A stretch of DNA of 64,000 bases from contig JBLDXI010000013.1 of assembly GCA_047495785.1 (NCBI GenBank), forward strand, positions 806,001 to 870,000, given 5' to 3'. This stretch comes from Lepidodermella squamata (Eukaryota; Animalia; Gastrotricha). The position numbers and the translations under genes were made by a program. How positions within the stretch are numbered: the first letter of the stretch is position 1; every line of letters begins with the position of its first letter. Shown one piece after another: positions 8,108 through 63,200 of the stretch. The notes beneath the pieces were generated by a model, which saw only the letters and a list, made by a program, of their open reading frames with translations, was not told where the DNA came from and did no database searches.

Positions 8108-10267
8108 ATGGGTAAGTTGATTATTTATTTCACCTTTTTCTTTCTACTTGCCAAATTTGACGAGGTCATCCTCGCTGTGTCAGTGATACACATATCTTGC
8201 TGCTATTAACTTGTCGAGATAGTAGATGAAATGTAAATGAGCTGCGATGGTGATGATAGCGGAATAGGGCTAGGGTAACCATGGGACCGCAGTGGCGTGC
8301 ATATGCAATTAGGGCCAAGTATTTGGCCGCGGCTAGTTACACATGTTTTGTTGAGTTCTCATCATGTCGACCCGCTTTCACTTGGCATATTTGCGTTGCG
8401 ATTACACGAGCAGAACAGCTTCATTGTAATAACTAGCTCTTCCCTCTCTGGGTTTTATTGTGGAGGAAGGCTTATAATTTCGCTCATAGCTAATAAATGG
8501 CGTCCTCTACTTTACCGGCGCGTTATACAGGTACTTGCCAAGCCATGACATATTAATAATTCCACCTTTGTTATTCATTTGTATATGACAATTTCGGCTA
8601 TTTGCTGTCGCTTCCATCAGCATCTACGGTGAGGAGTCTTATTTTAATTCACGTTCTAAGTTTACCTGTTTAATATCGTTAACAGCTCACCAGTAAACGA
8701 GAGGAGTTTCTGCGAGCTCACGCTGGTGGTGCATCGTCTCGTAGCGAGCAAAACCCTAGTGTCGCCACTTCATACGCGCCAACTTTGGAGAAACCGCTGA
8801 AAACGGCGACGATAAAAAGTTTGAACGCTGCCGAGACCGCGTCGATTTCTTCATCGACATCGTCGGGCGCACATAATTATGTCGGTTTCAGCAGTTTACC
8901 GAACCAGGCCTACAGAAGCGCAGTCCGGCGTGGCGTTGATTTCAATTTGATGGTCGTAGGTCCATCGGGCAGCGGGAAAAGCACATTTGTTAACACGCTG
9001 CTTGAAGCCGAAGTTTACGGGGCTGATTACAACGGCCCATCGGCTCGCATCGGAAAAACAGTTCGCGTGGATAAAACTCAGATTTTACTGCGTGAATCCA
9101 CTGTTTCAGTTCGTCTCAATGTTATTGACACTCCAGGATTCGGCGATGCAGTTGATAACACTAATTGGTTTGTTTAGCCGAAAATTTCTCAACATTTCAA
9201 AATCAATGGCGATTTATTTGTAGCTGGGACCCTATTATCGACTATCTCGATCGAACATTTGAAGAGTATTTGACTGCGGAAATGCGAGTTAATCGACAGG
9301 TTATTCAAGACTCGAGGGTCCATTGTTGTCTCTACTTCATTCAAGCCGGCTTGCATGGGTAATTTCCTGAATTTTAGCCAATAGAGCGTTTCTATTTATC
9401 GATTTTAGGTTGAGACCTATCGATATCGAATGTCTGAAAAAACTTGGTTCGAAAGTGAACGTCGTTCCGGTTATTTCCAAGGCGGACACAATGACCGCCG
9501 AGGAGCTGAAGCACTTCAAAAGTCTTATTATGTCCGAACTCGCTGCTAACCAAATCAAGGTATACCATTTTCCGGAACTCGCCGGCGCCGACGACACTTT
9601 CGGCCGCCTGTCCGCAAATGACAACGGCGGCGGCCAGCGAATTTTCCGCGAACGACAGCCTTTTGCCGTGGTTGGGTCGAATTGCCGGCTTGAACTGCCG
9701 GGCGGTCGAGTTGTGCGAGCCCGTCGATACCCGTGGGGCATTGTCGAGGTCGAAAATCCAGATCACAACGACTTTTTAGCCCTGAGGACGTTGTTGATTC
9801 GAACTCACCTGCCTCACATGAAAGACGTTACACATACCTCGCATTACGAAGCGTATCGCCAGGAGAAACTGGCCGCTGCGTTGACGGTGCCGGGCGAGAA
9901 TGACCCGGATCCTCTGATGAAAATGTCGCAGGAAAAACGGGCGCTTAACGACAAGCTGCGTCGCATGGAGGCGCAGATGGAGCAAGTTTTCGAGCAGAAG
10001 GTGCGCGAGAAGAAGAAGAAACTTCACGACTCGGAGGCCGATCTCGAGCAGCGGGCGCTGGCGATGCGGAAGAACCAGGAAGCGCAGGCGGCCGAAAACA
10101 GCGAAAAGGCGCGCAAATTCGAGGTTGAACTTCGCGAATGGCGCCAGCAATTCGGCCATCTCGAAAACATCGCCCTCTCGATGGTCGCGAATGCCGGCTC
10201 GCCTATCGGTGCTAAAACGGACCCTGCAGTAGCCGATAAAGCGAAAAAGGGCAAAAAGTTTTTCTAA
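8108..10267 (+). CDS. SEPT7: Septin, SEPT7-like
   Basis: Predicted exons: 8108-8111, 8621-8628, 8686-9167, 9224-9358, 9409-10267. Motifs: [11 protein letters not shown]1 [10 protein letters not shown]3 [16 protein letters not shown]4 SKAD, RRYPWG. It ends in a coiled coil and KAKKGKKFF, resembling the SEPT7 C-terminus. The first two tiny exons are less certain. Confidence 0.9.
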
Positions 10268-21511: not shown

Positions 21512-24500
21512 ATGATGGCGGCTGCTGCTGCAACCACTGAGAGCCAAGACAACCTTGTGAAAATCGTCAAGGAGTTTGCAATACAATTGCAACCTCACTT
21601 GAACATGGCAAACATCGACAAGATTGAAGATATGCTGATTCACATGGAAGAAAGCGATGGCGGCCATGAAATGTTAGCTTCTTTTCCACATCATCGTTAA
21701 TATAGTTGATGTGAATATTTACTCACAGGAAAGCGCTGGTCAAATTCATTCGACGAAAATTAACCGGAAAATTATCTGCTTACTTGGACGAAGAGATTGA
21801 AAAACATTCACAACTGAGTCACATTGATGCTGACCAACAGGAGAAATTAGTAGATGCCATATTTGAAAAAGTGCAGAAATCCAAACAGTGAGTGGTTGTC
21901 ATCTCTCAGTGATGATCTCTCACTTTCGTCAAAACCTTATTCTGTCTTTAGATTTCTGGACTGCAAGCAAAGCATCGACAACAGTGTTACTGAAGCCGTT
22001 AATCATTTACTGGAAAACTTCGAAAATGAAATGTTCATTTCGAATGCCAAAGAACAGAAAACTGAATTTGACAGAAATTCGCTAACCGTCTCAGACGACT
22101 CGTCGCTTTCTTTCTCTCTTACTCAGACAGCATTTCTCTTTGTTGGACAGGTATGCAATTTTGTAAAAAACCATTTTCATATGATTGTTTTGATAATTTC
22201 GTAGGAGCAACTTCTGCAACACGCTCAAGGGATTCAAAAGCCTAAATCTGTCAATGAAAGACTTGAAAACTTACGAGCCTTGTCACAAATGCCGGTATCA
22301 GACTTGCTGAATGCGGATTGTTGGCCGTTGATTCGCAAAGGCATCTTGGAATGTTTGGTTACTGACGAAGACGATAAACTTTGGTGAGAATCGACTTTGA
22401 ACGACCTGAATTAAGTATGAGCCAAATTATTAAAGGCTTGCAGGTTTGAAGTGCTGCACCCGGGGACTATCGTTCAATTCGCCGCCCAGCAAAGACTTGT
22501 ATATGCTGCTAGTAGATTATGTACTGCAAACTGTCACAAAGAAGCTTGCAAACTGGAAACTGTCAAGCGGTAATTATCGTTTTTAATCAAGTTTAAAGAT
22601 TAAGAAATTTATATTTCCCCAGGATTCGATGCTCAGAATCCTGCGATGGGTCGACTTGCCAAAGTTCTCCGAATTTTGAACGAATATCAGCAGCAAATCA
22701 CGAACTATTGGGTCAGGTTCTCTCAGGTAACTTGAATAATATGGTTTTGAATGTTGAGCTGAATTCCATTGTAACAGGAGCGGTTTTTGGAGGAGATTGT
22801 TGATGCAACGCTTGGATTTATGGTCATTCAACCTAATGTCGAGCTTCTTAGTCCTTATCATATTGTAGCAATGATAGACACGGAAGCTTATTGGTTGCGT
22901 GCTTGGACCCATGCTTCCTTCAGCCGTTTGCCACTTTTCCGTCTCCTAGAGAAGCATAAGGTGCTTATTCAGATGGCAGTTTCCTGCATTTTCAATTACG
23001 CATCAAAACCTCGAGCCGTCTCGCCATTGCACGATGTCAGACAGAACCGAGCCCAAATTCCTGAACAGCCACCTGCTTCGCCCTTACCCGCCTCCAAACC
23101 GATCCCACGTTACAACGACGCTGCCCTACAACACCTAGCCCTGTTATCTAGCATGCACATATTGCGCTACTTGCTGAGTTACAGACAGGGCGCTCGTTTC
23201 TTTCCCGTTCGATACAAAAACGACCAAATCACGTTGAAGCAGCTGCTGATAGAGCTTGTCCGCGTTATAAGCCACCCATGTGCAATGATCAATAAGCCAA
23301 GCTATCAACCGGTCAATCCAAGCTTTGTCGCAACTGATGTTCTGAAACACATATGCCTATCGACCAGTTTACGCTCGGTAATTTTCTCTGAAGAGTTCAT
23401 CTCTGCTCTTCTTGGGCCGGTTTGTTGGAACCCGTCTAATGTTGTAGGAACGGGTAGTACTAGCGACTCAGCCGCTGCTGAGCATTACAACAACGTACTG
23501 CTACTGGTCGCTCACGTGTTCTCAGCCTTAGCCTTCGATGAAGAGGGCAAGGCGTATTTATTATTCGGCGAATCTCTCGCCGCTAAATCAGCCTCAACAT
23601 CACGGCCCAACTCGTCTGTTTCATCCATATCTGCCGCTAACGGGACAACGGCAGTGCACACCTTGATACGTTTCGTGTTGAATAACATGGAATCTGATTT
23701 GTTATGGAGACGAGTTTTAGGCGCCTATATCTATCTATGCAGGCAGTTGTACACAAACTGCCCCGGGCTGGAGGTGATGAAGCCGTACAATCTGCATAAG
23801 AAATTGGCTGAAGCTAAAGTGAGGTCGGCTGCCGAGGCTAAATTCGCCGAAATGGAACGGACTGGCTCAGCTACTACCCTGGTCAATGATGACGTATCGT
23901 TAGGCAGCGATACCATTCCAGCCGTGAGCCGGGAGAGGTCGGGCAGCCGGGGTCGATTGGTCATTCCCGAATCTCTGACAGCGGGTGATGCGCTGGCAAG
24001 TGGCCGCATGCCTCGTGAACGGATCGGCAGTTCAAAACCGTCATTAGCCGCGTTTTGGGATGAAACGCTCAAGGATAACTTGCTAGGCTTCGCGTCTACG
24101 CCTGGTGGGATTTTGATGCTGTGTGAAACCGGTTTTTTCCAGGAATGCGTCTCGCACATGGTCCAGCGCTATTCTAGCGGCGAGCAGATGTCAAAGTACG
24201 AAAAATACGGATACGGATCAATGGTTTCCCAAATCGCTGCAACTCTTACGGGCAGTGAAGCTTTGGCTAAATCTACAGATCTGTTCCCTGATTTCATCTC
24301 AAGCCTGTGGTGCAAAATCGAGACTGTTCCGGATGAAGAGGCCCTGGCTACCCCGGCTCCTTGGCCGACGTCACCCATCGACAGGGCGCAACACAAGCCT
24401 TTCATTCGGCTGATTAATGTCGTCACGCCCTACCCTTCGATCTGGTTTCAACTCAGGACAGCGAAATTGCCGAATCGGGACGCTTATACCTACCACGACC

Positions 24501-27500
24501 AGCCGAGGTCGTTGGTTGAGTTACTCGACCGGATCGTCTTCATTAATTCAGACGCTAAGGTGTCATCTCTGTTCAACTACGAGCAGTCGGCAGCAGTTGG
24601 GCTTCGGCTACTCAGCAGCATGTGCGCTAATCTTAACAGCTTTGTTTTGCTCGAGAATCGATTTTCAGTGGTTGATATGCTGCTGAAGGGGCAGCGGGAG
24701 TCTTCGCTGCCTGACAATGGTGAATTCATCATTGACGAATTGACCGTTCTCCGCAATAGAATCTTGGTCTGGATAGCAGCATTGGGCGGCCCGACTGAGA
24801 AAATCCTACCGCCTTATGAATTGACAGCTCCCGAAGATTTTTCGGTCAACACCAGAAAGCGAAAGTACCCGCTTTTCGGGCAATTGCCGTTTCCTAATGA
24901 GTATCTTACCAGCCCGAGGCCGAATACGAGTCGAGGTCAGCCTGATCGAAATTTATTGGCGTTATCGAATAATACAGTTGGCTTGGACGTGGAAACGGCT
25001 GCCCACGTTCGAGAGTCCCTGCTTTCATGGCTAGGAAAGCGGCCGAATTTATTGGAGCAAAATAACCTGAAGACACTCCAATTCTCACTGATGGCACTGG
25101 CCCGGTCTCGAAATAATAACTTTCAAATACCGATTCCAAGCGCGAAGGAGAATAATAACTCCAGGCGAGGCGAAGTTGAGGATGACAAAACTTGGGTCAT
25201 TGAAATGGTCGTAGAATACGGCACTCGTCTCGGCGTGTTGGAACAGTCGAGTGAGCATGTTGCGAATTTGGCCACTTTGCTGAAAAACTGTGATCAATTG
25301 CTGGACGGAGATCAGGCGCAGGGCAGACCGCCCAGTCATTTGACGGACAGCTTCGATTGGTTTGTCGCTGTTATTTTTCTGCTGTTCGCCGGCGATACTG
25401 CTGCAGCTTGGTCGTTCCTCAAAGCTTTCGCGGGACTCACTGTGTCCCTTTTTCTTTGGCCGAAACGAGCGGTCAATTACGTAAGTTGAATAACTTTTAC
25501 TGGATGTTGCGGGTATTGCGGAGAATTGGAATTACTAATATTTACAATTCTAAATTAGTAAGAATCGTAATTTAACTGGTTGGGAGGAGTAATTTATCCT
25601 TCTCTAGTTGCGAATTCTTTTATGCAAATTTTCATCTTTTTCGATCCAAAGTTGAGAATATCGAAACGTCAAACTTGATTTTCCTTACTTTCCCAGGAAA
25701 TTGAAGTTAATACACGGCCCACAAAATCTTGACAACTAAAGGAGCCTAACTAAGGTCTATTCTTACTCGATTAGGACGAAATTCGAACGTTCGGATTAAG
25801 AGAATATGTCCTTGATTGATCATTCCTTTGTACCTAAAGCAGCCCGGGCCACATGAAAATTATTTTTGGAGAATCGTTCATTTTACATGCCTTCGAACCG
25901 ACTTGGCCCCTCAACCTTGGGTACTATGTATTGGAACAAAGGCGGTAAACATTATCTGTAGCTAAGAAATTCACTCAAACTCAATCATATGGACTGATTA
26001 TGGAATTAAATGTTGAGTGCATTCAAACATTTTCCAATCCTCCGCAAGTGGAATCCTTTTTAGATACGAACATCCTAGGACGTGTGGGGTACGATAGTAG
26101 CATTCTAGAGTTGAAAAAATTGCTGAAATCCAAAATGTACACAAAAACCGATCTAGGGTATAGTGAAAGATAAGAACGAAAATCTTTTTTATTGTCCTTA
26201 TCCGACATGTACAGTTAATAAATTTAAAAGCAAAATAAAACCAACAACAACAAACAGACATGACAAATAAGGCGCCGGCACAACAGGGACACGCGCTTGT
26301 CTTGGACAGTGCACGGACTACACTATTGGGGAGGCAGATGAGCGAAATTATCGGCTGCGTAAGGTTTAACGGTCAGGGAGAAGGTGAAGGATAAGAGGAA
26401 TGCTAATGGCAGATGAGGTGAGAAGACAGAAAGAAACTTGAAGCACGGCGGAACAGGAGACCGCAGACAGGAATTATAAGCGGATATAACATAAACAGAT
26501 AGAAAAAAGAAACGGAAAGAAAAGAGGGTAACATAAGGACTGTAGCGGAGAGAAGGAGGAGAGGGAGATTAAGTCACGAAGACACAGGGAGCGGGCCCGA
26601 CGACAGGCGGTCATGGAGGACAACGACTGGCGGCTTCATCGTCGTCGGCGGACGTAAGCGGACGCTTTCGATTTGCTCGCGAAGTGGCAGGACATCTGCA
26701 AGCATTCTCTGCGTAGCGGGCTTGAACCTGGCAGAAAAACTCTGAAAGGCTAGGCAGGCGACAGCGCCGCTCGAGTTCGGTGATACGAACACGGTCAGCG
26801 AGGCGTACGTTAAGCATGGCGCGCAGGCACTTATTCTGGAGGACGTCGAGGCGGCGCAACTGTTGCTTGGCAGCGGACGAAAAGGCAACACAGCCGAAGG
26901 AAGCGATCGAGCGGACGAGGGCGAGGTAGCTGGCACGACGCCAGCGGAAGGAGAGTCCAGGGCGCCGAACGATTGTGTGGTACCAAGAAAGATTTTGCCC
27001 GCAGCGGCTCAGAGTACGGTCCATGTGGGGCTTCCACGAGAGCTTGGCGTCAAAGTGAATGCCTAAGACGCGCAACACTTCGACCTGAGGGATAGCAGAG
27101 CCATTGAGCGACAAATGCAGGACTGGTGGCTGGCGCCTGAAAGCGAGCGCTTCACTTTTAGAGGCGTTGAACTGTTGGCGCCAAAGCCGGGCCCACGAAG
27201 ACACTCGGTCGATTTCCGCCTGTACTCGGGACTCAGCCTCCACAAAGGACACACCGGTACCGAGGACGGTCAAATCGTCAGCGTAGGCGTCAAGGACGCT
27301 ACCAGGAGCGCCAGAGGCACCCAGGAGATCCGCGGTGAATAAGATGTAGAGCAGAGGCGACAGCGGTGAGCCCTGTGGCACTCCGCAATTAACCACAACG
27401 GAGCGACTAAGGAAACCGGCCACGCGGGCCTGCAGTTTGCGGTCGCGCAGAAAGTCTGTGAGCCAGCCGATGAGGTTCCGCGGGAGAGGAAGTCCGCAGA

Positions 27501-29604
27501 GGCGGTGGACGAGGCCGGCGTGCCATACGGAGTCGTAAGCCGCCTTCACATCAAGACCCACAACGACCAACTTGAGCTTGTCAGCACGGCACTGATACGC
27601 CCGATGAGCGATTTGGACGGGAATGTCGACAGCGGAGTGGTGCTCGCGGAACCCATACTGATTGTCAGGCAGAAGGTGTCTATCCTCTAAGAAACGACTC
27701 ATCCAGCGCGCAACGATCGCCTCCAATATCTTACCATCAGAAGGCAATAGCGAAATCGGGCGTTGAGAGCTAACGGCGTCAGACGGCTTACCCGGCTTGG
27801 GAATTGGCTACCGAGACACATATTGTAGAGGCGCCGAAGGTGAGCCTGCAACGGAACGCCACCCCACTTGTAATAGACATTACCCACGCCATCGATCCCT
27901 GGAGCCTTAAACGGATGCAGACGGTCGATCTCTTGAGCAAGCATGCGTTGGCTGACACTGAAGTCGTCAGGGCCTGGCAGATGAATCGTAGCCTTGCTTT
28001 GAAGGTCAGGATCGGTGGCCATCAGGGTCTCAAGCTCGAGCCAACGCTTGCGCAGGGCGTCGTCGGCGGCCGGGTCGCAGTAGGGCGACATCGGCGAAGT
28101 GAAGTGGGTAAGTAACTCGTCAGCAAGCGAAGCGGACGGTGCCAGAACAGTTCCATCGTCCAGTTTCATGTGCCCACTGGAGCGCCGCGGCTGATGTCGG
28201 TCGAGCCGCCGGAGCCGGACCCACGCCTCGCGATACGGAAGTTGTCCTGAAAGAGCCTCAACCATACGCAGATTTGCAACGTCGCGGCGGAACTCGTGCT
28301 GTTGCTTAACTTCTCAAAACTCGCCGTCCAGTCGCTTGATCTCTACTGCCAACTGGGGATCACAATGAGGGCCAATCGCGCGCTCAAGAACACGCTTCTG
28401 CTTCAGGATCAAGCGCATATCGGCAGACATGGAAATCTTCTTTAGTTCACTGCGGTCACATAGGGGTACATGAAGGCGACGCGCCTCGACGATAGCGGCG
28501 ATAGCGTCGAGCTTGACTCACTGGGTTCAATTTCAGCTTTCGGAAACAGGAATTTGCGGTAACAAATGCATCAGCTTTTTAATGGGAAATTGGAACAGCA
28601 AATGCATATGCGAGCCCCCAAGTGTCCGTGCCCGCTCCGCAGTGAGAGCAGTTAAAACAACCTTGTGCCCTTTGCCAAGCGCGTATAGTTGAACCAACTG
28701 GGCGATGAAACAGTGTCAACTTCTGTCTTTGAAGCCACTGAAAGGCCATCGAATTTCACCAAACCAGAGTTGTTGAACGCAACTCTTAAATCAGGCGATG
28801 TGAAAAGGCGATCGCTCAGTTGCGATCGCGCCAAACGAAAAAATAACGTGACAGAGGAAATTTGTACGATGAAACGGTAGTATATTTGATAACACCGCGA
28901 CAGTGATCTTCTTTTCAGTAGGATAGAGAATAAGAGCATTGATTTCTGGATCAAGACCCGACGTTAGACTTAGGAAGATTTCCGTCAGCACTTTTTTCGC
29001 GGCTCTCGACGATAAGAATCTGCCTTTGCCAAGTTAGGAAAATTTTCGCGATTCGCTTGAAAATTCGGAAATTCGCCGAACCCCAATTTTCCCATGTTAG
29101 CGAGAGAATTATTTTCAAAAAAATAAAAACTCGATTTTTCGTATTTGTTTCTATTAGTCTGGCTTTACGGATTCGTTTCTCGACTCGGGTCTAACAATAT
29201 TATTCGCTCACACTTACCACTACGTGCAATGGATTCTGCAAGAACAGTTACCTCTCGTGTCATCCGCCCTCACCATGTCCGGCTTCTCGTGCTCGCAGCT
29301 GTGCGACCAGTGGCTGTGCCAGTCGTTCTTCAACTACCTTGACCTGCCCGAAGCCTTCGAATTCATCGCGCTGTGCCTGGCTGCCGGGCCTGACTACGTC
29401 GCCTACGCCAGTGTTGCGCTGTTCGACCACCTGCGAATACCTATTGCGAAGGCGCATCACAACCAGGAGGTTCACGTCGGCATCAAGGAACAACCGATTG
29501 GCGGCAATTTTTCTTTCTGTGAACGGCTCGATTTTATGCAAGATTTAGAACGCAAATATCGCAAATCAATGTTTTCCGATTTAGCGTCCTTTTTCAACAA
29601 ATAA
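21512..29604 (+). CDS. TBC1D32: Protein broad-minded (BROMI)/TBC1D32, ciliary protein
   Basis: Exons 21512-21672, 21729-21887, 21952-22150, 22205-22383, 22436-22569, 22623-22726, 22778-25480, 29158-29604. Recognisable blocks: EDMLIHMEESD, YWVRFSQERFLEEIVDATL, DNLLGFASTPGG, SKYEKYGYG, DWFVAVIFL, SGFSCSQLCDQWLCQSFFNYLD, GPDYVAY. Confidence 0.88.
26185..28515 (-). mobile_element. Degenerate 5'-truncated non-LTR retrotransposon (LINE RT domain) in the last TBC1D32 intron, antisense
   Basis: RT motifs: KAPGIDG, PIPKPGKP...RPISLLP, NQYGFRE, LDVKAAYDSVWH, GVPQGSPLSPLLY, YADD, LGIHFD. A deletion/frameshift lies near 27810 and no endonuclease domain is seen. The GC-rich body is followed by a pyrimidine-rich 3' UTR ending in AATAAAAAA (minus strand) at ~26185. 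Boundaries are approximate and no TSD was found. Confidence 0.9.
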
Positions 29605-29810
29605 TCATCATGATGGCTGTGTTATTTATACGCACGATTTTTTATACTCACTCTTGCTTTTTTTTTAATTTTCAGTTATTTGAATAAAAAGAAGTGTTCT
29701 TGGCATGACAAATATTGTTTTATTTTGAATGAGGTCATTTTCAGTGGCAGAATAAACATGATATATTAAACAATACGTATCGACGGCCGATTTGCTTCAA
29801 TGCAGGCAGG

Positions 29811-32800
29811 TCAAATTTCGTAGAGCCGGGTTAAAATTGGAATCAGAGCCGGATTCAGCGCCGAGTTGAAGTATCTGGAAAATAAAGGGACGAATCGATA
29901 TTAGATTCGCTAATCGGAAAATTAAATTACCCAAGCCATAACAACAGCCGAATAGCCTTGTGTGAAGATTCGATTTTGAAGAAAAGACCGATGGCATACA
30001 TAAGAAAGAAGGGACCCCAGCATACGCCCAGAACTATAGCCGTACTATAGATGTAGTGCTCATTAACCTGAAAAAGTAACATTCGATGAATCATTCTACT
30101 TTTCTAGGACGTGACAAAAAAGTAAACTAACATTGCATTGCCGCCAATACACATCGAGAGGTAGTTGGTCATCATTAGGATTCAAGGAATTGCTGACGAA
30201 AGCGCGTAGTCGTCTGAAAAACATCATTTTGTGCCCGGTGTCGTCGTCTAAGCCGACGTTTCGCGGCCGCACCGGCGAGGGCTGCCTAGTGAAACGTGTT
30301 TTGTCGATCTCGCCCATATCTAAGAAGACGTCCGTTTCCGAAGCAGCTTCATTAGCATTGCTCGTCGACATGTACGTTGGAGTTATCGGTGAATGAAGCA
30401 TGGAAACCTCCATAGTGTCATCTAAAAACATATTGGAGCCCTCTGTTCAGTATTCATTCATTGAGTCTAATCTTACCAGTGAGTAATTTAGAAGTAGTAA
30501 TGATCACTCTTTCAGGGGATACTTTTCTTGTCCTGGGCGTAAGCGTCGAAAAGCTGCCACTAACGCTGACACCGATACGAGCCGGGTCGGGCGATAGCAA
30601 CTCTACCGTGGAATTTTTGCGAAATAAACTCGATGAAACACTGCGACTACTACGCATTGTCGACGGCGTCACCGGTTGTAGAAGATTAGCATCGTTGGTT
30701 GTAGTTCCATGAGTTGGCAACAGACCGTTCGGAAGTAACGCATCCGATTTTGCACGATGAAAGCCCGAAGCTGGCGAATTTTCTACGTTGAACCTTACTT
30801 TACGCGATTTGTTGACTAGATCAGCAAAATTCGCGTCCTCATAGTTCAGCAACACACTCGAGTCGGCCCCACTTATGTAAGCTACCTGCCTACTATCATT
30901 GGAACCCACGGTCAATTTTAGCCGGTCGAACGCTTTTTCGATCGAATTCGGCGACATGGGTGACTTGGCGTCTTGGTTGCTTGCCGCATCGCCGGGCTTC
31001 GGCGAAGAAGGACCCGGTTTGCGAAGGGTCGGCGGGGACGAGTCGGCAGCGTGACGAATTGCCGAACTCGATGGGCCACTTTCACGGGCTGAATAGTGCC
31101 GCGCACAGAGGCTAACAGGTCCTTTGCGACCTTGACGCGGCGGCTTGTTCACGAAAGAGGTTGTCGGCGCTCTGTGGTCCGGCATTCGATCCACATTGGA
31201 ACCCTCAGTTAATTCGAACCCCACCGGTAGCATGCTTGAAAGTGAAATCAGAGAAACAGGCCGGGGTGTTTTGCGATGAGTAGACCCAGGTTCCTCTGCT
31301 TTGGCGGGCGTGTCCCCAGGTTCCTTTGCCTCAGGTCCAGCAGCGATGCCTTTTTCCGTGTCATCACTTTTATTGCTTATTTGCTCGCTGGCTGGCGATT
31401 TTGACGACTCGGCATTGGAACTAGAACGGCGGCGTCTGATCGATAGGCGTATTCTGCGTGCTGGATTAAGCGTCTCGAAGAAATTTTTGGCCAACAGCAC
31501 AGGCGAAGCAAAAACCGTCGCTTTTCGGTTAATCTTCGCTAAATCCCGTCTGAATCGGTACGACCTAGAAAAACATCGAGAACTCAATTGAAAATTTCAC
31601 TTATTCACGAATTTAAATACCGAAATGAAAGCGTTAACAGTGTGATCATAGGTACCCAGAATGAAGCAAGAGTTGAGTAAAATGCGTAGATTGCATTGTC
31701 AGCTAAATTGCAATCAAATAGAACCGGTGAGCCGATGCCGAACGCGAGTAGGCCTAATATTCGAAACATCTGCTTTATTCGTGATCGCCGCTTTTTTCCA
31801 ACATAAGTTGTCGGTGAGGTTACACACCAGTATCTGAACAAAAAGTTCCAGTTTTTGAGATTTTTTCTTCGTTTTTTTTCAATTTTTTTACTTGTCCAGG
31901 CAGCTGATGTACTGATTCCAAATAGCCGCTGTGCATAGAGCTACATCGAAAGCGTACCATATCCGGCACAGTGGGGTATTAAATAGCCAATCACCTATTA
32001 TTCGTGAAAAAAAGAAAAACGGACGTTACTAGAGGAATGGTATAAGGGGCATCTATAATTAAAGATAATGTGCGCAGCTAAAAATGAACATTAAAATCTT
32101 GAAAAAATAATAAAGCTATTTAGCCAACTGCCAAATCGAAATTCTATACTGCGCATCGCGGAAGAGATGAAACCGGAAAAGCTTCACCGCCGACGCTTTT
32201 TGCCTGTAATCGAAGCGGAGACTACCTGCTGCTTCCTGTGAACTAGACTCTAGGTTTTACGAACCCTAGGTGCAACGCAACATAAAATAAAATAGCCTAA
32301 TTTATAGCTTTGAAATTAAAAAGCCGTCGACTTATTTTTATCCCTCTCTTTAACACGTGATTCATCTTCGATTTCATCGACCGAATTAACATTTTGAAGT
32401 TGAAAAATTGTTTCAAATAACTCACCGGCCATGTGAGAATCTAGCAGCACATGAATCGGCATGATCAACACTCCGAGTAAAAAATCGATAACTGTTTGCG
32501 TAACATGAAACAGCTGATGAGTTCTATGGCTGATTGATGACCTAAAAACAGACAAGTGCGTAACACGTGTAATAAAGACAATAATTAAGACTAACGAGGA
32601 AATAATATCACGGCGGATGTCTAACAACACGATGCTGTTGGCGAGGATGCAAAAAATGCACGTCGCCGTACCGAAAGTGACTACGCCGAAGCCGAGCATG
32701 CCCATAACAGGCTGTTCTTCTTCGCCCATGAGATTGATGCTATTGATGCTGAGCAGAGGTGTAGTTGTTGAGCGAGTCAGGCCGCTGCTGGCAAATGTTG

Positions 32801-32966
32801 CATTGCCTTGGATGTCGCTGTCGCCAGCAAAGTATTGCACTTGGTTGCCGTCATCGACCAAATCGTGCACGGATTGTATCACATCATCTTCTTCGCTGGC
32901 CAAGATTAGCGACGGCGGAAACTGTGAATTATTTGAAAAATTGACGTTAGCTTCATATCGAGACAT
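29811..32966 (-). CDS. Class A GPCR, biogenic-amine-receptor-like, atypical, with a ~470-aa third intracellular loop
   Basis: Exons 32966-32596, 32541-32426, 31994-31892, 31833-31621, 31564-30477, 30442-30132, 30067-29931, 29874-29811. Seven TM segments: ILANSIV; IDFLLGVLIMP; CRIWYAFDVALCTAAIW..LDKYW; GIGSPVLF; FYSTLASFWVP; CWGPFF; WLGYFNSALNP. Confidence 0.88.
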
Positions 32967-34785
32967 AGATAATTATGGCCCAAGGTTAAATTTTCGGGCC
33001 TTATTGACACAATGTGAAAAAAACGAAGCAAAAGAAAGCATAGGAACACACGCTTTTTTAAACTGATTCTCGGAGGCCAATTCAAGTGCTGCAATTTTTT
33101 GTGCCTCATATTGCCGATGAGGTGTAAAAGAAGAGAATCTTATTATACACAGTGAGTGAACTCACCTGCCGCTCGGCCATTTGTCCGCGCCGGCGATGCG
33201 CCGCTGGATTAGAGAGCAGTAACTTTTACGGCGACTGCTCGCCTGCTCGGTTGCGTTCCCAACGGCACAAAATTTTCAGCGGCAGTAGAATTATCGGCTT
33301 ATTTTTAGGTGAGCAAAAAAACGCTACGGCGACTGCAGAGCGCATCAACGCCGCGCCACTGTGTTTTTTGCCGCCAAAGCACCGCCGCCTTGACCGTCGT
33401 ACATTTAATTATTTTTCCTTATAATATGTTATGCGCTTTTTCTACTACTGGAGGCAACGAATAAGGTATATAAGGTGTGTCTATTAGAGCTATTAGCGAG
33501 CTCTTGGCTGGATGAACGTGGATAAAGAAGACCGGAAGTGTGAAGAAAAGCGTAATAAACAATATGAACTTGGACGCGGCAAGGTTGAATAATTTTTTAA
33601 TAATAATAATTCGCAACTGCTGTGTTTGAAGTTGTAGTGCATGCTTGTTTCAAATCGAATAAGTAACGCATAGTATATGACATTGAGATGCGATAAGTCA
33701 GTAGAGCAGCATCAGGCATAAAATCATCGCGAGCAGCGCGACGGGCAGTCGGAAGGACGCTGAAGACGATGAGTTAAAAAAAACATGAGCACACGGCAGC
33801 GGAGGAAAAATAATGCCTTCAACAATGTGCAATCATCGCACGGCTTTGCCTCCACTTTGTCGGCAATATACGAGGAAGAGATTTCTCCTTCCTCTTCCTC
33901 ATTGTGTATAGCGCGCGCGCGCCTTTCAAGCCGTGCATTAAAAAATATGAATAAATTACTAATAAAAAACTTGAACGACTTCTTGTGCTCTGCTACCCTT
34001 TTCTGAGATGAGTCGCGCCAGCGTTATTCTATCTTACACAAGTATAACACAATCGATGGCGGCGATGTGTCCTTTTTATTAGAACGAAACATTATTTGTT
34101 TATATACTTTTATAATCGGTGTTCTTGGTTTTTTTAAGCCAAAGTTTCCCCGTATTGCTATAGAGCCGCCGTGTGGGCCATAAAAAGTAATAGCTATTCG
34201 GTCTGCTGCTATTTGACGATGTGATAAAGATGATAATAGCTAAAAAAAATCAAACCAAAGCGCTTCCTTTTCCTATATTCGGAACTATACACTGCTCATC
34301 AGGAGATAATTACTGGGCTAAAATGTTTCCAAAAACAGACTTTGCGGAAGTTTTCAGTAGACAGAATGAAAATCGCTAAAAGCAATTTAGAAAAAAATGT
34401 TAATTACCTAGTTAATTCATAATCCTCAGCCCCGAAAAAGCTGGTCCGCCGCTGGGTTCGTATATATATTTATATATATGCACTTCGGTTAAAAAAACGT
34501 AATAAAAAGCCACTCTTTGACTTCTTCGCCACTCTTTTACGCTCTTCTCGGGCTTCGGTCGCTTCCTGTAGATTATTTTTCTCTAACTTCCGAGCTATGT
34601 TCACTGGTTATAAATAACGCTAAAATATTATTCGCGCAACTGCACATTCCTTATTCGGAGTTTGCGGGTGATTGAACAGGTGACTCAAGTGGTTTGCGTA
34701 AATCAATTTTTTGCCAGGTGAGAGGTGAGCATTATACTGCATAATAACGAAAAAATGAATTTTGAATAGTTATGCTGCTTAAATA

Positions 34786-52679: not shown

Positions 52680-54797
52680 ATGACACAACGCTTGCGCGAG
52701 ATGGATCTGATGGCCCTAGGTCGGCAACGCGACTACGACGACCAAGGAAATCTGATCGAAGTGGCAAATGCTGACCTTCGGGGTCGGCGCTTTCAGGAGT
52801 CTTATGCCATGCCTCGTGTGGAGTGCGATGTCTGCAAAGTCAGGTATGGTATCGCCTCGGCTGCTTCTTCACGCTGCTACGACTGCGGCGACAACCTATG
52901 CGCCTATTGCGCATCGGTTCATCGCTCAACCAAAGCAACAGCTCAGGTAAAATTGATTATTAGTCTTTGTCAAATCAATAGAATCCACCTTAAATATTTC
53001 TATTCTTTATAGCACCGTGTCGTGCGCATCCAACCTGGCTCTTTTGTCGCGCCCGTTTATATGGTGACCGACCCGCGCACGGGCGAACAAGTGGCGCCGG
53101 ATGCCTTATTGGGAGCTGCTGGCGCCGGCAATATTTCCTTCGCCGATGTTTCTACCTCATGCATTCCACATGGCCGTAGAGCTGAGAAATATTGCACGCT
53201 ATGCGAGGAAGCTGTCTGTGACCTTTGCGAACCTAACCATGAGGGCCATCGCGTTGAAGCTCTAACCGAAATGAACCGCCAACTACAGGCTAGCCTAGTT
53301 TCCCTGATCAAGCAGACTCACAACCAAAAGGCGAACATGGCGAAGGTGCAGCGATTTCTAGGCTCCCAGCGTAAATGGATCAATGACAGGCGTAGCGAAT
53401 TGTTGGAAAACGTGAGACAGCGCGCTGCTCAACTGCACAAATCAATCGATGTAATGGAACTGCGGTTCAAGGATGAAATTGAGGCGGCTGCTATCAAAGC
53501 TTTCGCACGTGTTGAAAGCGATTACCAACGCTTCTCAAATCTACATACGGATTGCACGAAATCGATCACGGACGCTGTTTTCGCTATTCAACACGAAGCT
53601 AGTCCGAAGAAGCTGTTGGAAACTCAAGCGAAACTACTACACCAGCTTCGGCCAACTGCTTTGACCCAGGCGACTAACCCAACTGATGTGACGCCGCCAA
53701 TCAATTTCTACTGGAGGTTCACGTTTTCGGGCGATGGCGAAGAGCAACTCACGAAAAATTTCGGCTCATTGGACAATTTCTCGCTGTTGCCAGTCACTGC
53801 TTTCAATGTCTCCTTGGCCGATGATATCAGGCCAGCCGATCCTACAGGAATCTGCGTAAATGAAAATCAAACGATTCTCGTAGCTGATTACGCCAATGGT
53901 CGAGTGAAACTTTTTGGACCTGCCGGGGAATCGTTGGGTTACGCTGGAAAAGGTTCGCTGAATTCAGCATTTGGCGTAGCAATTCTGCCGGATTCCCGCA
54001 GGTTCGCAGTCACGGATCCAGCCTCAGGGTGTATCGTGATTATTCAGGACAGCATCGGCAAGGCGATACGTGTGCCAGTCACGCATGGATCAGCTCTTCA
54101 AGGCCTTTGCTCGACGAATGGCAGTTTGCTATACGCAGCGGCTCCGACAACGAAATCAGTGCTCATCTTCGACGCATCAGCCAGGGTAATTTATTCATTT
54201 TCTAATTATTCCTAATTTTATTCTCCTCCAATTATTTTCAAGGTGGACTCTGGGGTCAGATTTAAAGGGGAAATATCGACGGCAAGAAGGAATGATGGGA
54301 AAGAAACAACACTAGTAGGGGCCCCTATCGAAGCAGGTGACAGTCTTTTCCAGAGGCCAACCTTCGTCTCTGCTGATCAATTCGGCCGATTGGCTGTTTC
54401 AGATTACTTCGCAGCCCAGGTTCAGGTGTTGCTAATAGAATCTGACCTGTCGTCTACCCTTATTCGAACATACACCGGCGACTACACTCTTCCAGATCGC
54501 AATCGAGATCTGCCAAAGTCGGCCGACCTATTCTCGCATAATCCTTCCCGACAGTTTCACATGGGCGATAAAACTAGAAATCGACTGGCGACACCAGAAG
54601 GTGTTGCTTTTGACGAGTATGGTCATTTGTTCATAGCAGACAGCGACAGCGGCATGGTTCACATGGCGTCGCCGAACTGTTCCCCGATTTGCCATACGAC
54701 TGCTTTGACAGGCGAACCACGTGCCCTCTGCGCGATTAATGGCTCACTAATGATTACTGAAAAAGGTGGCCAAGTTAGAATATATCGCTATGCTTAG
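52680..54797 (+). CDS. RING-less TRIM-NHL-like protein (B-box 1, B-box 2, coiled coil, NHL repeats)
   Basis: Exons 52680-52946, 53013-54185, 54243-54797. Motifs: CDVC..CYDCGDNLCAYC..H..H; CIPH..YCTLCEEAVCDLC..H.GH; NHL repeats PTGICVNE..ILVADYANGRVKLF and PEGVAFDEYGHLFIADS. No RING is encoded in frame upstream. Confidence 0.85.
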
Positions 54798-56368: not shown

Positions 56369-59300
56369 TCAAACTTTATTATCGTCAAAAGTGTGAGTGC
56401 TTTTGCAACTGCTAACGCGTTTCAGCACCGGCGATAACCGATCAGGGCTAGCGATATCGATGAACTCAAGAGCCGGCGCCTGGTTGATGGCTTCGATGGC
56501 TGACGCTGTGTTCTCAGACACACGGCGATGTATATTTTCGATGATGGCGAGCCGCTGGCCGTGCGGGTGGCGGGTGCTGCAATTTCGCGAAACTTGACGT
56601 AGTAGCACTGTGTTTAAAAACTGAATGTTATTCTCATTCAGACGCAGACCGCGCCGCGACCGGCCCTCCGACAAGGCAGTTTGCAGATTTTGATGATTTT
56701 GCGGCGTCGTGACAACTTTATGCTCATCGCCATCAAACGCGTCATTTTCAAACTCCTCGATGCGGTCTTCGTCAGGGCTGCTGCCGAAATCGAGATTACC
56801 GCCTACCATAAGCGGTATCTCCGCGTATTTAGGCTGGATGGAGAGTTCGCGCAGCAAACGGCGCCGAAGCCGCTCGTCGCGCAACCTCTTGACCTCAGCT
56901 GCCGATGCGTTGCCAGCTATCGTCAGATACGGGTCGTGATGAATCAACTCGCCCGTTGATGTCACCGTCGTGTCGACCTGCGAGTATTGGGTAGTGCCTA
57001 GCGTGCTAGCATCTGCTTGGTTCGGCGCAACTTCGTTCACTTCTTCCATCTCACTGATGACGACAGCTTTGTTGTACTCGCCAATCGCTGCTTCGACGCT
57101 AGATACAAAGTGGAAATGGTCGAGGCCGAGTTTTTCGAATTCGCGATGCACCTCTTCGTTGAGGTTCGCGAAAACAACGTGCAGGCCCTTCTGCACAGCG
57201 GAAAGCAGAAGGCTCCGGAAAGCTTGAACTCCGGTGTAATCGACAGATTGAACGAACGTACAGTCGATTATTAGGTGAGATTCCTGCTCGAGCAGAGCTG
57301 CAACTTTGTCGAGAAACTTGTCTGCGCTCGGGTACTTCATGCCATGTGACAGCTTGACAATAACAAGCGAGCTGAAACGAAGAAAAAATCGTCAAGTAGG
57401 GTTATTATTATCTATAAACATAGACAAATATAATCAGACAAATTTGTTGCCCATGTCCATAAAATCTAATTCGCAAAAGTCGCCCTTAATTTTTCAAGCT
57501 CTACGCAAAAAGTGTTTAACGATGCTCTGAGCATTTCGGATTGAGTCTTCGGTCGACATTGATATGACCAAGCCAGCCTTTAAAAACATGTCCTCCTAGA
57601 TTTCCGATATTGGTTTCAATTTTTGATTATTTTTGACATTCAATGAACATTAGAGTGGGTACGAACCTTGGGTGCTCAGTATCTCCGAACGAGAAACTCG
57701 AGGCAGGGTGCTTTCTGGTAATGTGGAGCTGAGTATGCACGATTCCTCGCAGTAGAATCATAGCATTGATGCTGAGGCAAATGATGACCTGAAAATCCAG
57801 AGAAATAAATTTACAGAGCCATGACATGAAAAACTCACTCCGTAGCTAATTTCGAAGAAAACGCAGACTAAAATGGTGAATACGAGCATGAAAGCATCGG
57901 TACGGCAGTGGCGCCATACATCGGGAATAATGCGGAAATCGCACAAATTCAGCGCCGCTACAATGATAATCGCCGCCAGCGTAGCTTTCGGCACAAAGTA
58001 AAACACGGGCGTTAGCGCGTTCAACGCAATTATCACAACGCTGGCGGAGATAATTGACGCCAATTGCGAGCGAACGTGACACTGGTCGTTGAGAGCGCAC
58101 CGGGTAACGGCGGCTGTTACTGGTACGCCGCCAAGGAAGGCAGTTACAATGTTGGCGATTCCTACAGACATTAGTTCTTGCCTAAGAAAAGAATTTCAAC
58201 TCCAAAAATAGCGGGGTTCGATTATTCTGTTACCTAGCGTCAACTCGGTAGCCGTTTTTCCGACCGAGGGCTTTCAGAATAGCAAACATTTCCATGATAA
58301 TCATCACCGGGACCACAATGTAGCCGACAATCAGATCACCGAGCGTGGTTGCGACGTCTTTCAGAACTACAGGCTCAGGAATATGTCGGCTTAAATTGCC
58401 ACTATACAGCGACATGTTCAGCGGTTCAACAATGTCAAATCGTGGCACAGCAAAGCTCGGCATTCCAGGCTTAATGTAACCGACCAGGGTGATGCCAGCA
58501 TGAGCCGGGTCCGGTGCATCCCGAGTAAGGGAGTAAGCAATTCCGGTGGAGATGATGAAAACAACAATGTTTTTACAGGCACACAGGAAGCGAATGGCTT
58601 CAAGGGCGACTTCGAAGCTGTGCGAGTTTGAACTTGGCTTCGTTGCATCGTCGACATGTCTGCTGTACTGGCTCATGTTACTGCTGCTTCGTTGCATGGC
58701 GCGACGACGGCGATATCGTCTAATTAACTTAGCCGCCGTTTCAATAAAAGTCGGCAAGCTTTGCATGAATAGCAGAAACACGAGAACAGTCAAACCGATG
58801 ACAGTGTCCATCAAACTGTTTTTTTTGACAAAAATAATGATTTTTTTCAGAATTTCGACATTCCAGACAACTAACTTGATATCTTGTATCCGTTCGCCAA
58901 CGTAAATCAGCTGTTTCACGAAAACCCCGGGAATTTTGAAGGGGCACTTTTGAAGACCTAACAGAGGCTGAAAAAGCATGATGAACATCAAATTAAATTC
59001 CTTGAAAAAAAAATTAAAAAAATTCACTAGTAAATAATCTCGACTACAAAATTAAAAAAATTAAAAATTAAAGAGTTGAGGAAATAACTTACCGCTAACT
59101 GACTCGCTGCAATAGTGATGCCCGCCGCGGTAGTAAATCCTGAGACAACTGGGATCGAAAACAAGTTCACGATGAAGCCGAACTGCAAAGCCCCGATCAA
59201 AAACAGGATGATTCCGCCGAAAAAGGCCAGAATCGTCGCGCAAGTCGCGTCTCCAGTATCGTAGAGCGGATTTACGGTGGCACTGACGTGCCCTGTAATC

Positions 59301-60260: not shown

Positions 60261-63200
60261 TCAATGAACGCCGTAAAATTTGCTGTCGCCGTGGCTGTGG
60301 CTCTCCATCGACTCCGTGCCAGCGCTCATGTCGATGAACTTCACAGCCGGAGACGCACTGACACGCTGAATCGCCTGCAAAATCTCTCCGGTTTCGTTGG
60401 CAACCGCACTTGACCTGTAGCTCTGTTCGTTGTCTGTCGGTTGATGGGTTGATGGGTTGCGGGCGACGACGTTCGGCTCACCCTGCAGGCGGCTGCCAAT
60501 CGACGACATGCGACGCGATCGGCTGATGACGCTGTTGCGTGACAACTCGCGAAGAAGCACGCGATTCAAAAATTGAATGTTGACCTCTTTCGGCCGGTCG
60601 TCGTCCAATATCGGAATTGATGAGACAATACCGCCAGACGAGCGGCGTTCGTCGTCAGCCGTTATCGGGTCTAGGTTCTTCTCGCCATCGTAGTCGACAT
60701 TGCCCGCAACAGTGAGTGGGACATCGACATACGTTGGTTGAACAGATAGTCGGCGAATGAGGCGTTGTCTAGCTTTTTCTTCCATTTCCTTTTCATGCGC
60801 CATTTTCGCGGCCATTAAATCGGCCGTCGACGTCAGGTTAACTCCAGCTGGGCCGTCCTCAGGTATCGCATCCATTGCGGTTGCTTCCAGGTCGCTGATC
60901 ACCATAGCCTTGTTGTACTCACCTACAGCTTGGTCTATGGACGAAACAAATCTGAACTGTTCCAAGCCGAGCTTTTCCAGCTGCTTGTGAACATTTTCGT
61001 TCAAATTAGCGAAAACGACGTGAAGACCGCGTTTAACAGCCGTGAGTAACAGGCTTCGAAAAGCTTGAATACCCGTGTAGTCGACAGATTGAACGAAAGT
61101 GCAGTCGATAATCAAGTGTGACTCTCGCGCTAAAATTGCTTCGACTTTGCACAGAAATTTCTCGACACTTGGGTATTTCATGCCGTGCGACATGCGAATA
61201 ACGACAATCGAATTTGTCGGGGTCGTGTCGCCGAAAGTAAATTTCGATTCGGGGTATTTTCTCGTCACTTGAAGATCCATGCCAACGGTCGCTTTCAAGA
61301 ACATGATCATGTTGATGAACAGACAGAAGAGGACCTAAAGGCATTGGACAAATTAATGACAAAAGAAACGAGTACAGTTTTAATCGAATTTGTCATTTCA
61401 ATTTTCCTCAATTTTTCAGTAAAAACCAATTTTTTTCGAAAGAAATTTGAGATATTTTCGTAGTAAAATCGCATTTCTACTTACACCGTAACTGATTTCG
61501 AAAAATACGCATATGAGAATGGTCAGGACAAGAAGGACGCAATCAGCCCGACAATGCTTCCAAACATCAGGAATCTTGAAAAATAATGAAAAATTATTGA
61601 AATTTCGTGGTATAACAAAAGGCGTTAACTCACAATATGAAAATCGACGAGGTTCAACGCGGCCACCATGACGACCGCTGGAAAATACGATAATTCGAAT
61701 ATTGATTAATTTATTATTGATAAATCTACCGCCGAGAGTTGCCTTTGGAATAAAATAGAAGACACTCGTCAACGTGTTAAGGCAGATGATGACGATGATT
61801 GCGCTGATGACGGATCCAATTTGGGTGCGTACTCGGCATTGATCATTCAAGGCCGCTCGGGTGACAGCAGCGGTGATCGGCATGCCGTGCAGAAAACCAG
61901 TGACTAGGTTAGCCAGGCCGATCGCCAACAATTCTTGCCTAGCATCAACACGGTAGCCGTTTTTGCTGCCGAGAGCTTTCAAGATGGCGAAAAGTTCCAT
62001 GACGATCATGAGGGGCAGAATGATGAAGCCGATGGTAAGATCGCTCATCAACTGCTTCTCAGGCTTAACCAATATATCATTCACGATCGTATCGTTGCCA
62101 ACAGTCGTTATGTTTCGCTTAATCAGCGCGAAAGGTGGTATGTCGAAATTCATCATGCCAGGTTTGATATAGCCGACCAAGCTCGCGCCAATGTTGCCGT
62201 CATTTGCCTTATAAAGGCCATAAGCGATACCGGTTGACAAAATGAAAAGAAAAACGTTTTTGCCTGTGAAATGAATGCTTGAAAAATTGCCGATAGGATG
62301 AAGATGGCCAACTTACAAGCACACATGAATCGCATGATATTGATGACCTTGGCAAACTTGGCCTTCTTCTCCTCGGTTTCGAGCTTTATGCATTTGTGGC
62401 CGATAAGTTCTGCTATTCTTGGTAAATTCTGCATTAGCATCAGAAAGCCAATCGATGCGAAACCAAAGGCAATGTCACTTTTGCTATAAGGGATGAAAAT
62501 TTGTCATTTGATGATCTTTAACCTGAAAAATCGCTTACTTCACTTTTGGCCCATAATCTACAACATTTTTTATGTGTTTGACAAAAACACCTGGAATGGA
62601 GGCCGGGTTCTTTTTCAATCCGAAGATGCTCTAAAAAAACTTTATTACTATTTAGGCCGAATAAATTGAAGCAGACAAACCTTCAATTGACTGGCTGTAT
62701 AGCAAATATTAAAAAAAAACCTTTAATTTTGGTAAAAAAAAATGTGTAAATCACTTGCCTGTGATTGTGATACCAGCGGCTGTCATGAAACCTGAAACAA
62801 CAGGAATCGAGAAGAGATTGACGATGAACCCGAGTTTGAAAATAGCCATTAGCAACAAAGCAACGCCTGTGATCAGTGCCAAGATAGTCGCACATGTTGG
62901 ATCGCCGTCATCGTCGTCGTAATTAGGGTTAGCCCCTGACGCTATTTGACCCGTAATCATGCAAATGACAGCATCGGGACCAATAGATGCGTCTTTGGAT
63001 GTTCCCATTAGAATGTAGATAAACTGGCCGATGATTGACGAGTGAAGACCGACTTCGGGGCGGAGGTTGGCAAGGGAGCCATACGCCAAACACTGCGGCA
63101 CCATGGTGATGCCGACAGTCAGACCGGCTACGATGTCATAATAGAAGTCCTCGCGGGTGTATTTCGGCAGCCAAACTAAAATCGGAAACAGGCGCCGTAA

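Follow-up and report, generated by a model that had tools for sequence, protein, structure and literature searches.

The window analysed here, a stretch of 64,000 nucleotides from the gastrotrich Lepidodermella squamata (contig JBLDXI010000013.1, positions 806,001 to 870,000), carries on its minus strand, at 32966-29811, a gene for a seven-transmembrane (7TM) receptor of class A of the G-protein-coupled receptors (GPCRs). Comparison of the predicted protein with orthologues found on three contigs (L001 and L003 from ENA metagenomes, L002 from Logan) shows that it has a complete, conserved orthosteric amine pocket, and that the canonical activation network has been replaced by a fixed set of residues: K3.50, Q3.43, S5.58, L6.44, I/L7.53 and a helix 8 stub. 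It is likely that the gene encodes a functional, lineage-restricted receptor of the biogenic-amine branch with a replaced activation network, putatively still able to signal.

Gene structure and receptor class

The exons and splice sites were set by open reading frame (ORF) and splice reading of the minus strand of 29600-33100. The model obtained comprises 8 exons and 793 codons, and its joined coding sequence keeps an open frame with 0 internal stops up to a TGA inside exon 8. All seven introns have GT-AG borders, six of them measuring 54-64 bp and the remaining one 431 bp, and the junctions are backed by the comparative data given below. An earlier note made from the DNA letters only (the sequence-only reading) had described an intact frame over 8 exons, which holds for the 793 codons and for every junction; its range, 29811-32541, begins at exon 2 and leaves out exon 1 with the N-terminus and the first transmembrane helix (TM1). 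Homology and family searches were made exon by exon, and the joined model was used for the frame check, residue numbering, tblastn against the fetched loci and codon comparison. The coordinates of the exons and of the other features, including the intracellular (ICL) and extracellular (ECL) loops, are collected in Table 1.

Table 1. Receptor exons and other features; positions are those of the window unless the contig is named.
Feature	Position	Strand	Content
Exon 1	32966-32596	-	start codon, ~90-aa extracellular N-terminus with N-x-S/T sequons, TM1 (N1.50 = N110)
Exon 2	32541-32426	-	ICL1 and TM2 (D2.50 = D143)
Exon 3	31994-31892	-	ECL1 and TM3: C3.25, D3.32 (31947-31945), C3.36, T3.37, Q3.43, D3.49
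Exon 4	31833-31621	-	Y3.51, ICL2, TM4, 8-aa ECL2 with C45.50, TM5 (S5.42/T5.43/S5.46, P5.50, S5.58 at 31628-31626)
Exon 5	31564-30477	-	initial 362 codons of ICL3, Ser/Arg/Pro-rich
Exon 6	30421-30132	-	final 96 codons of ICL3; weak collinear similarity to L003
Exon 7	30067-29931	-	TM6 (L6.44, C6.47, W6.48 at 30019-30017, P6.50, F6.51, F6.52), ECL3, TM7 start (W7.40)
Exon 8	29874-29811	-	Y7.43, N7.45, S7.46, NPALI (29855-29841), 9-residue tail, TGA stop
BROMI-like long ORF	22787-25489	+	Pfam BROMI and BROMI_C (broad-minded, cilium-associated TBC-like protein)
Putative last BROMI-like exons	29176-29598	+	end tail-to-tail against the receptor gene; link to the long ORF assumed
BROMI-like neighbour in orthologue contig	L003:3312-3908		
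Reverse-transcriptase ORF	26611-27747	-	378 aa, RVT_1 domain (E 1e-24)
STAS-domain ORF	56369-57340	-	STAS domain
STAS-domain ORF	60261-61310	-	STAS domain
TRIM-NHL-like ORF	53022-54215	+	B-box zinc finger and NHL repeat
Septin ORF	9410-10267	+	septin

The class of the receptor is indicated by searches of the PDB. With phmmer, exon 3 matches amine receptors only (5-HT5A, H2, alpha1A, H1, D2 and D4), and both exon 4 and a profile built from the sequences of four species match D2, 5-HT1A/1B/1E and 5-HT5A, and then alpha2A, at E 3e-5 to 1e-3; the best matches of exon 4 itself are D2 and 5-HT1A/B/E (E 3e-5 to 1e-4; 25-27 bits). Exon 7 gives weak matches to alpha1A/alpha2 adrenoceptors and its profile to alpha2/D3, and the search with the 20-aa profile of exon 8 returned no match. 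The matches that rise above noise with exon 3, exon 4 and the exon 4 profile are almost all dopamine, serotonin, histamine, adrenergic and muscarinic receptors and, therefore, the protein is to be placed, on sequence similarity, within the biogenic-amine branch of class A, as one of its divergent members. This agrees with the aminergic-type identity proposed by the sequence-only reading. In Pfam searches with single exons, the 7tm_1 family scores 17.3 bits with exon 3 (E=0.0035) and 21.4 bits with the TM1-TM2 piece of L002, against a gathering threshold of 30.5, and the other exons give no match; the part of the third loop encoded by exon 5 contains no Pfam domain. A look-up of exon 4 in the ESM Atlas yielded only leads below 0.9, the top cluster being a rotifer-labelled 7tm_1 fragment. 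The build of the protein, with a very long disordered ICL3 and almost no C-terminal tail, resembles that of the D2/5-HT1/alpha2 group, a likeness of layout and of best exon matches that is not to be read as a subfamily placement.

Preserved pocket and replaced activation switches

The framework of class A is present throughout the model. It includes N110 (N1.50), D143 (D2.50), the pair C172 (C3.25)/C238 (C45.50), P258 (P5.50), C743-W744-G745-P746 (6.47-6.50) and N780-P781 (7.49-7.50), and these reference residues are also kept in the orthologues. Within the pocket, the amine counter-ion D3.32 is D179, C3.36/T3.37 are C183/T184, and the polar TM5 contacts S5.42/T5.43/S5.46 correspond to S250/T251/S254, which are invariant in four sequences. 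The aromatic cage is formed by W744 (6.48), F747/F748 (6.51/6.52), W771 (7.40) and Y774 (7.43); together with D3.32, it is invariant among the available orthologues. Every residue that had been listed for the pocket in the sequence-only reading, from D3.32 to Y7.43 and including the TM3-ECL2 Cys pair, was found at the place given for it.

The class A hallmarks R3.50, Y5.58 and Y7.53 are all missing from the model. The DRY position reads D196-K197-Y198, and the K3.50 codon is split AA|A across the 31892/31833 junction, exon 3 ending with its first two bases and exon 4 supplying the last one. Further altered positions are Q190 (3.43), A186 (3.39), S266 (5.58) and L740 (6.44), and the NPxxY position reads NPALI (residues 780-784), with I784 at 7.53 and nine residues before the stop. 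Trp is absent at 4.50, and neither E6.30 nor a basic motif precedes TM6. Accordingly, the switch changes reported earlier (R3.50K, L3.43Q, Y5.58S, F6.44L and NPALI) and their coordinates are borne out, as are the missing W4.50, the missing basic motif of TM6 and the tail of ~9 aa after NPALI. The change S3.39A, announced in the same list, is real in the window gene and is not a trait of the family, since the full-length orthologue on L003 has S3.39. ECL2 is indeed short and consists of 8 residues (DCNLADNA; ~10 aa in the earlier reading), and ICL3, Ser/Pro/Arg-rich as described, measures ~450 aa (~470 aa in the earlier reading). The composition of this loop, approximated by the stretch 269-728 (460 residues), is 14% S, 9% R and 9% P, with Ser and Thr together making up 21%. 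It had been pointed out that other splice sites might restore the DRY and NPxxY motifs; a scan of all minus-strand frames of 32430-31600 and 30100-27000 turned up no sequence that could code for [DE]R[YFWHC] or NPxx[YF] instead.

Orthologues, synteny and selection

When exon 4 was searched exhaustively with HMMER against 1.84 billion cluster representatives, two real relatives were recovered, both fragments, and no other protein at E<=0.001; the four remaining matches are repeats or noise. The first relative, P0001, is 80% identical to exon 4 and lies on L002, which spans TM1-TM5, while the second, P0002, is 94% identical and lies on L001, which spans TM4-ICL3. Of two word searches, the one with the exon 1-2 ORF gave a single match, P0007, on the 3.9-kb contig L003, and the one with the exon 7 ORF gave none. 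Scanning JGI metagenomes with the exon 4 alignment produced 205 pattern matches, 0 of which were confirmed, and the collection of 1.84 billion cluster representatives holds no annotated full-length relative. Judging from these searches, the receptor family is confined to a sparsely sampled lineage.

L003 holds a complete orthologue. This gene has the same neighbour as that of the window, the 3' end of a BROMI-like gene in tail-to-tail orientation (tblastx 1e-60), so that microsynteny is conserved and the L003 gene qualifies as a positional orthologue. In position and phase, L003 shares six of the seven introns, and the donor phase of exon 1 is identical to that of its counterpart. The equivalent of exon 8 reads YFNSALNPALLPIMTGLYNV, with its stop codon placed where that of the window gene lies. 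On L002, introns 3 and 4 of the window gene are present and introns 1 and 2 are not, and an additional intron, absent from the window gene, lies within TM3 (TALCR|IWYALDV; L002:351-440). Within the receptor family, the positions of introns are turning over. On L001, exons 4 and 5 are contiguous, without intron 4, and are joined exactly at the predicted junction, which reflects either intron loss or cDNA-derived reads. The first ~140 positions of this contig read in another frame as a dihydrolipoamide-dehydrogenase-like peptide that meets exon 4 at a shared word of ~20 nt, so L001 is probably an assembly chimera at its 5' end.

The replaced residues are retained in the orthologues. Both L002 and L003 keep K3.50, its AA|A split codon and the intron phase being the same as in the window gene, S5.58 is present in 4/4 sequences of the exon 4 alignment, and Q3.43 in 3/3 sequences that cover the position. 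L6.44, CWGPFF, WLGYFNSALNPAL[I/L] and the stop after a last exon of 20 codons are common to the window gene and L003, position 7.53 being I in the former and L in the latter. Over the 238 codons of the 7TM core, identity to L003 is 78.6%, with TM2 of exon 2 at 90% and exon 7 at 80%, and only 42% of third codon positions are identical; the rate of non-synonymous substitution (dN) is 0.14-0.15, the synonymous rate (dS) is saturated, and the dN/dS ratio is ~0.03-0.07 overall and ~0.06 against L002. The GC content of the four sequences ranges from 37% to 58%. These values indicate that the sequences come from deeply diverged species, that purifying selection acts strongly on the gene, and that its non-canonical switch residues are fixed, not decaying. 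The search for orthologues that the sequence-only reading had recommended hence found K3.50, Q3.43, S5.58, L6.44 and NPAL[I/L] retained under purifying selection.

It is hardly credible, in the light of these data, that the gene is a degenerating paralogue or that wrong splice sites in the gene prediction generated DKY and NPALI. The lack of an above-threshold Pfam match for single exons and of an annotated full-length relative could be quoted for such readings. However, the syntenic orthologue shares the motifs, the stop codon and six intron positions and phases, and the K3.50 split codon is identical in three species. Pseudogene status was rejected on the low dN/dS with saturated dS and the intron conservation, in agreement with the earlier statement that the gene does not look like a pseudogene, which the orthologues and the shared synteny also bear out; mis-splicing was rejected on the scan without alternative motif-coding sequence nearby and on the orthologue conservation.

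Alignment with L003 also shows strong purifying selection on both faces of the 7TM bundle. Identity is 84% in the outer half, ECL2 reaching 100%, and 75% in the cytoplasmic face, with 82% in ICL2, where RRSRIKQMFR is invariant. The base of TM6 reads NEHYIY in L003 as well, and RSY ends TM5 in 4/4 sequences. The long loop has kept its size (~400-450 residues) and composition, and barely its sequence: clear conservation of exon 5 with L001 is confined to the ~35 residues next to TM5, and the remainder aligns weakly with L003.

This pattern bears on the possibility that an amine-receptor scaffold now serves a non-amine ligand or has become constitutively active without any ligand. Residue 3.43 is normally hydrophobic and helps to keep class A receptors inactive, and the conservation of Q3.43 and L6.44 would fit such a shift, as would the long branch of the gene, which has no further exon 4 relatives at E<=0.001, and the unusually short and fully conserved ECL2. 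Such a change of ligand or of activity is nevertheless improbable, as all the classical amine-contact residues are invariant across the sampled species, a pattern that makes little sense unless the ligand is amine-like.

Two conserved tyrosines stand close to the lost ones. Y270 (5.62) lies one turn below 5.58, in the RSY of the four sequences, and Y791 (7.60) lies in the helix 8 stub, within an LY present in both sequences; Y5.62 and Y7.60 may substitute for the missing tyrosines. As a separate matter, a PP1-type RVxF motif (KVRF/RVRF) in the loop was considered and discarded as evidence, since ~0.4 chance matches are expected by a rough estimate and local alignment fails to pair the motifs. 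The stretch itself, [RK]VRF followed by GFHR..S..D.L..LP, is found at ~30990-30900 on the minus strand (exon 5, residues ~520-545) and at ~2480-2640 of L003, with a spacing that differs by ~30 residues, and is to be taken as a lead only.

Among the other genes of the window, the reverse-transcriptase ORF resembles a copy of a retroelement; it is situated between the BROMI ORF and the receptor gene and may lie in an intron of BROMI. The two STAS ORFs, near each other, suggest tandem SLC26-type anion-transporter genes.

Function and comparison with known receptors

Of all class A GPCRs, amine receptors are the ones understood best, and R3.50, Y5.58 and Y7.53 count as almost indispensable to their activation machinery. 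Together, these three residues make up a water-bridged network of the active state of amine receptors (PMC12355687). Their joint and stable replacement is therefore a real departure. For the favoured explanation, that of a functional amine-branch receptor with a replaced activation network, the predicted ligand would be an amine of the catechol or phenol kind (akin to dopamine, octopamine, tyramine or noradrenaline), and the signal would be passed via a remodelled yet specific cytoplasmic interface. A pure ligand sink needs no conserved cytoplasmic surface, so the conservation of this face suggests that a partner (G protein, GRK/arrestin or other) probably docks there. We lean, by a small degree, towards an interface that still engages a heterotrimeric G protein rather than only arrestin or scaffolds on the Ser/Thr-rich loop, in which case the receptor would probably couple in a Gi/o-like manner, its efficacy or basal activity being altered. 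Several points weigh against this explanation. A canonical receptor deprived of R3.50, Y5.58 and Y7.53 would be severely impaired in activating G proteins, the single-exon 7tm_1 scores (17-21 bits) stay below the 30.5-bit cut-off, and the conservation of TM6-TM7 is known from a single orthologue, L003. A limited literature search found no report on R3.50K mutants. In some receptors, this exchange may leave activity in place or even increase it.

The loss of the network could also mean that the receptor binds its amine without activating any G protein, acting as a scavenger or decoy, as an arrestin-biased receptor, as a scaffold via its loop or as a heteromer partner of canonical amine receptors. 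The fact that K3.50, S5.58 and I/L7.53 were replaced jointly and then conserved is consistent with such a silent receptor, as are the absence of E6.30 and the near absence of helix 8 and C-tail; the loop, rich in Ser and Thr, could be a phosphorylation platform, and the parallels with ACKR2 and GPR61/62/135 described below point in the same direction. Yet ICL2 and the base of TM6 are strongly conserved, which would be needless for a pure sink, and the cytoplasmic face approaches the pocket half in conservation. Moreover, Lys retains the positive charge of Arg, the loop sequence is poorly conserved, so that specific scaffold motifs are not evident, and the layout of long ICL3 and short tail is also that of ordinary Gi/o-coupled receptors of D2/5-HT1/alpha2 type. 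These observations weaken the idea of a silent decoy, and a receptor that is silent towards G proteins is in our view rather unlikely. We hold as a little more doubtful the wider proposal of a conserved micro-invertebrate family of atypical amine receptors with a classical pocket, which would never use a G protein and would instead remove the transmitter or buffer its level, or else signal via arrestin or scaffolds on the ~450-residue loop.

A natural receptor lineage has replaced R3.50, Y5.58 and Y7.53 and kept the replacements under strong purifying selection among species with saturated synonymous sites, with the amine pocket preserved. Should the receptor couple to G proteins, it would represent an alternative solution for the active state, with Q3.43, Y5.62 and Y7.60 as candidate compensating residues. 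Should it not, the concept of atypical receptor would be widened from chemokines to monoamines, and a family devoid of G-protein signalling would give the atypical chemokine receptors (ACKRs) their first counterpart among amine receptors.

The closest known systems are the Gi/o amine receptors (D2-like/5-HT1/5-HT5/alpha2, and the invertebrate tyramine/octopamine receptors of the same build). They share with the window gene D3.32-V-x-x-C3.36-T3.37, Ser/Thr at 5.42/5.43/5.46, CWxPFF, WxGYxNSxxNP, a very long ICL3 and a very short C-terminus. The window gene differs from them in K3.50, S5.58, I/L7.53, Q3.43 and L6.44, in having neither W4.50 nor E6.30, in its 8-residue ECL2 and helix 8 stub, and in its low overall similarity (25-27 bits with exon 4).

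The ACKRs resemble the window gene in concept, as ligand binding is kept while the G-protein motif is altered. They belong to the chemokine branch of class A, whereas the window gene belongs to the amine branch, and they retain NPxxY-type motifs and long phosphorylatable C-tails, which the window gene lacks. The analogy with ACKRs drawn in the sequence-only reading proves apt in one detail, since ACKR2 (D6) also has DKY instead of DRY (DKYLEIV; PMC6174752) and is thus a precedent for this motif in a receptor that does not use G proteins.

GPR61, GPR62 and GPR135 are, like the window gene, relatives of amine receptors of a non-standard kind. GPR61 has been described as related to biogenic amine receptors (PMC10517971), and all three display constitutive activity, recruit arrestin spontaneously, in the absence of ligand, and modulate MT2 in heteromers (PMC5566548). 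They are vertebrate orphans and not orthologous to the window gene, which keeps the full classical set of amine contacts.

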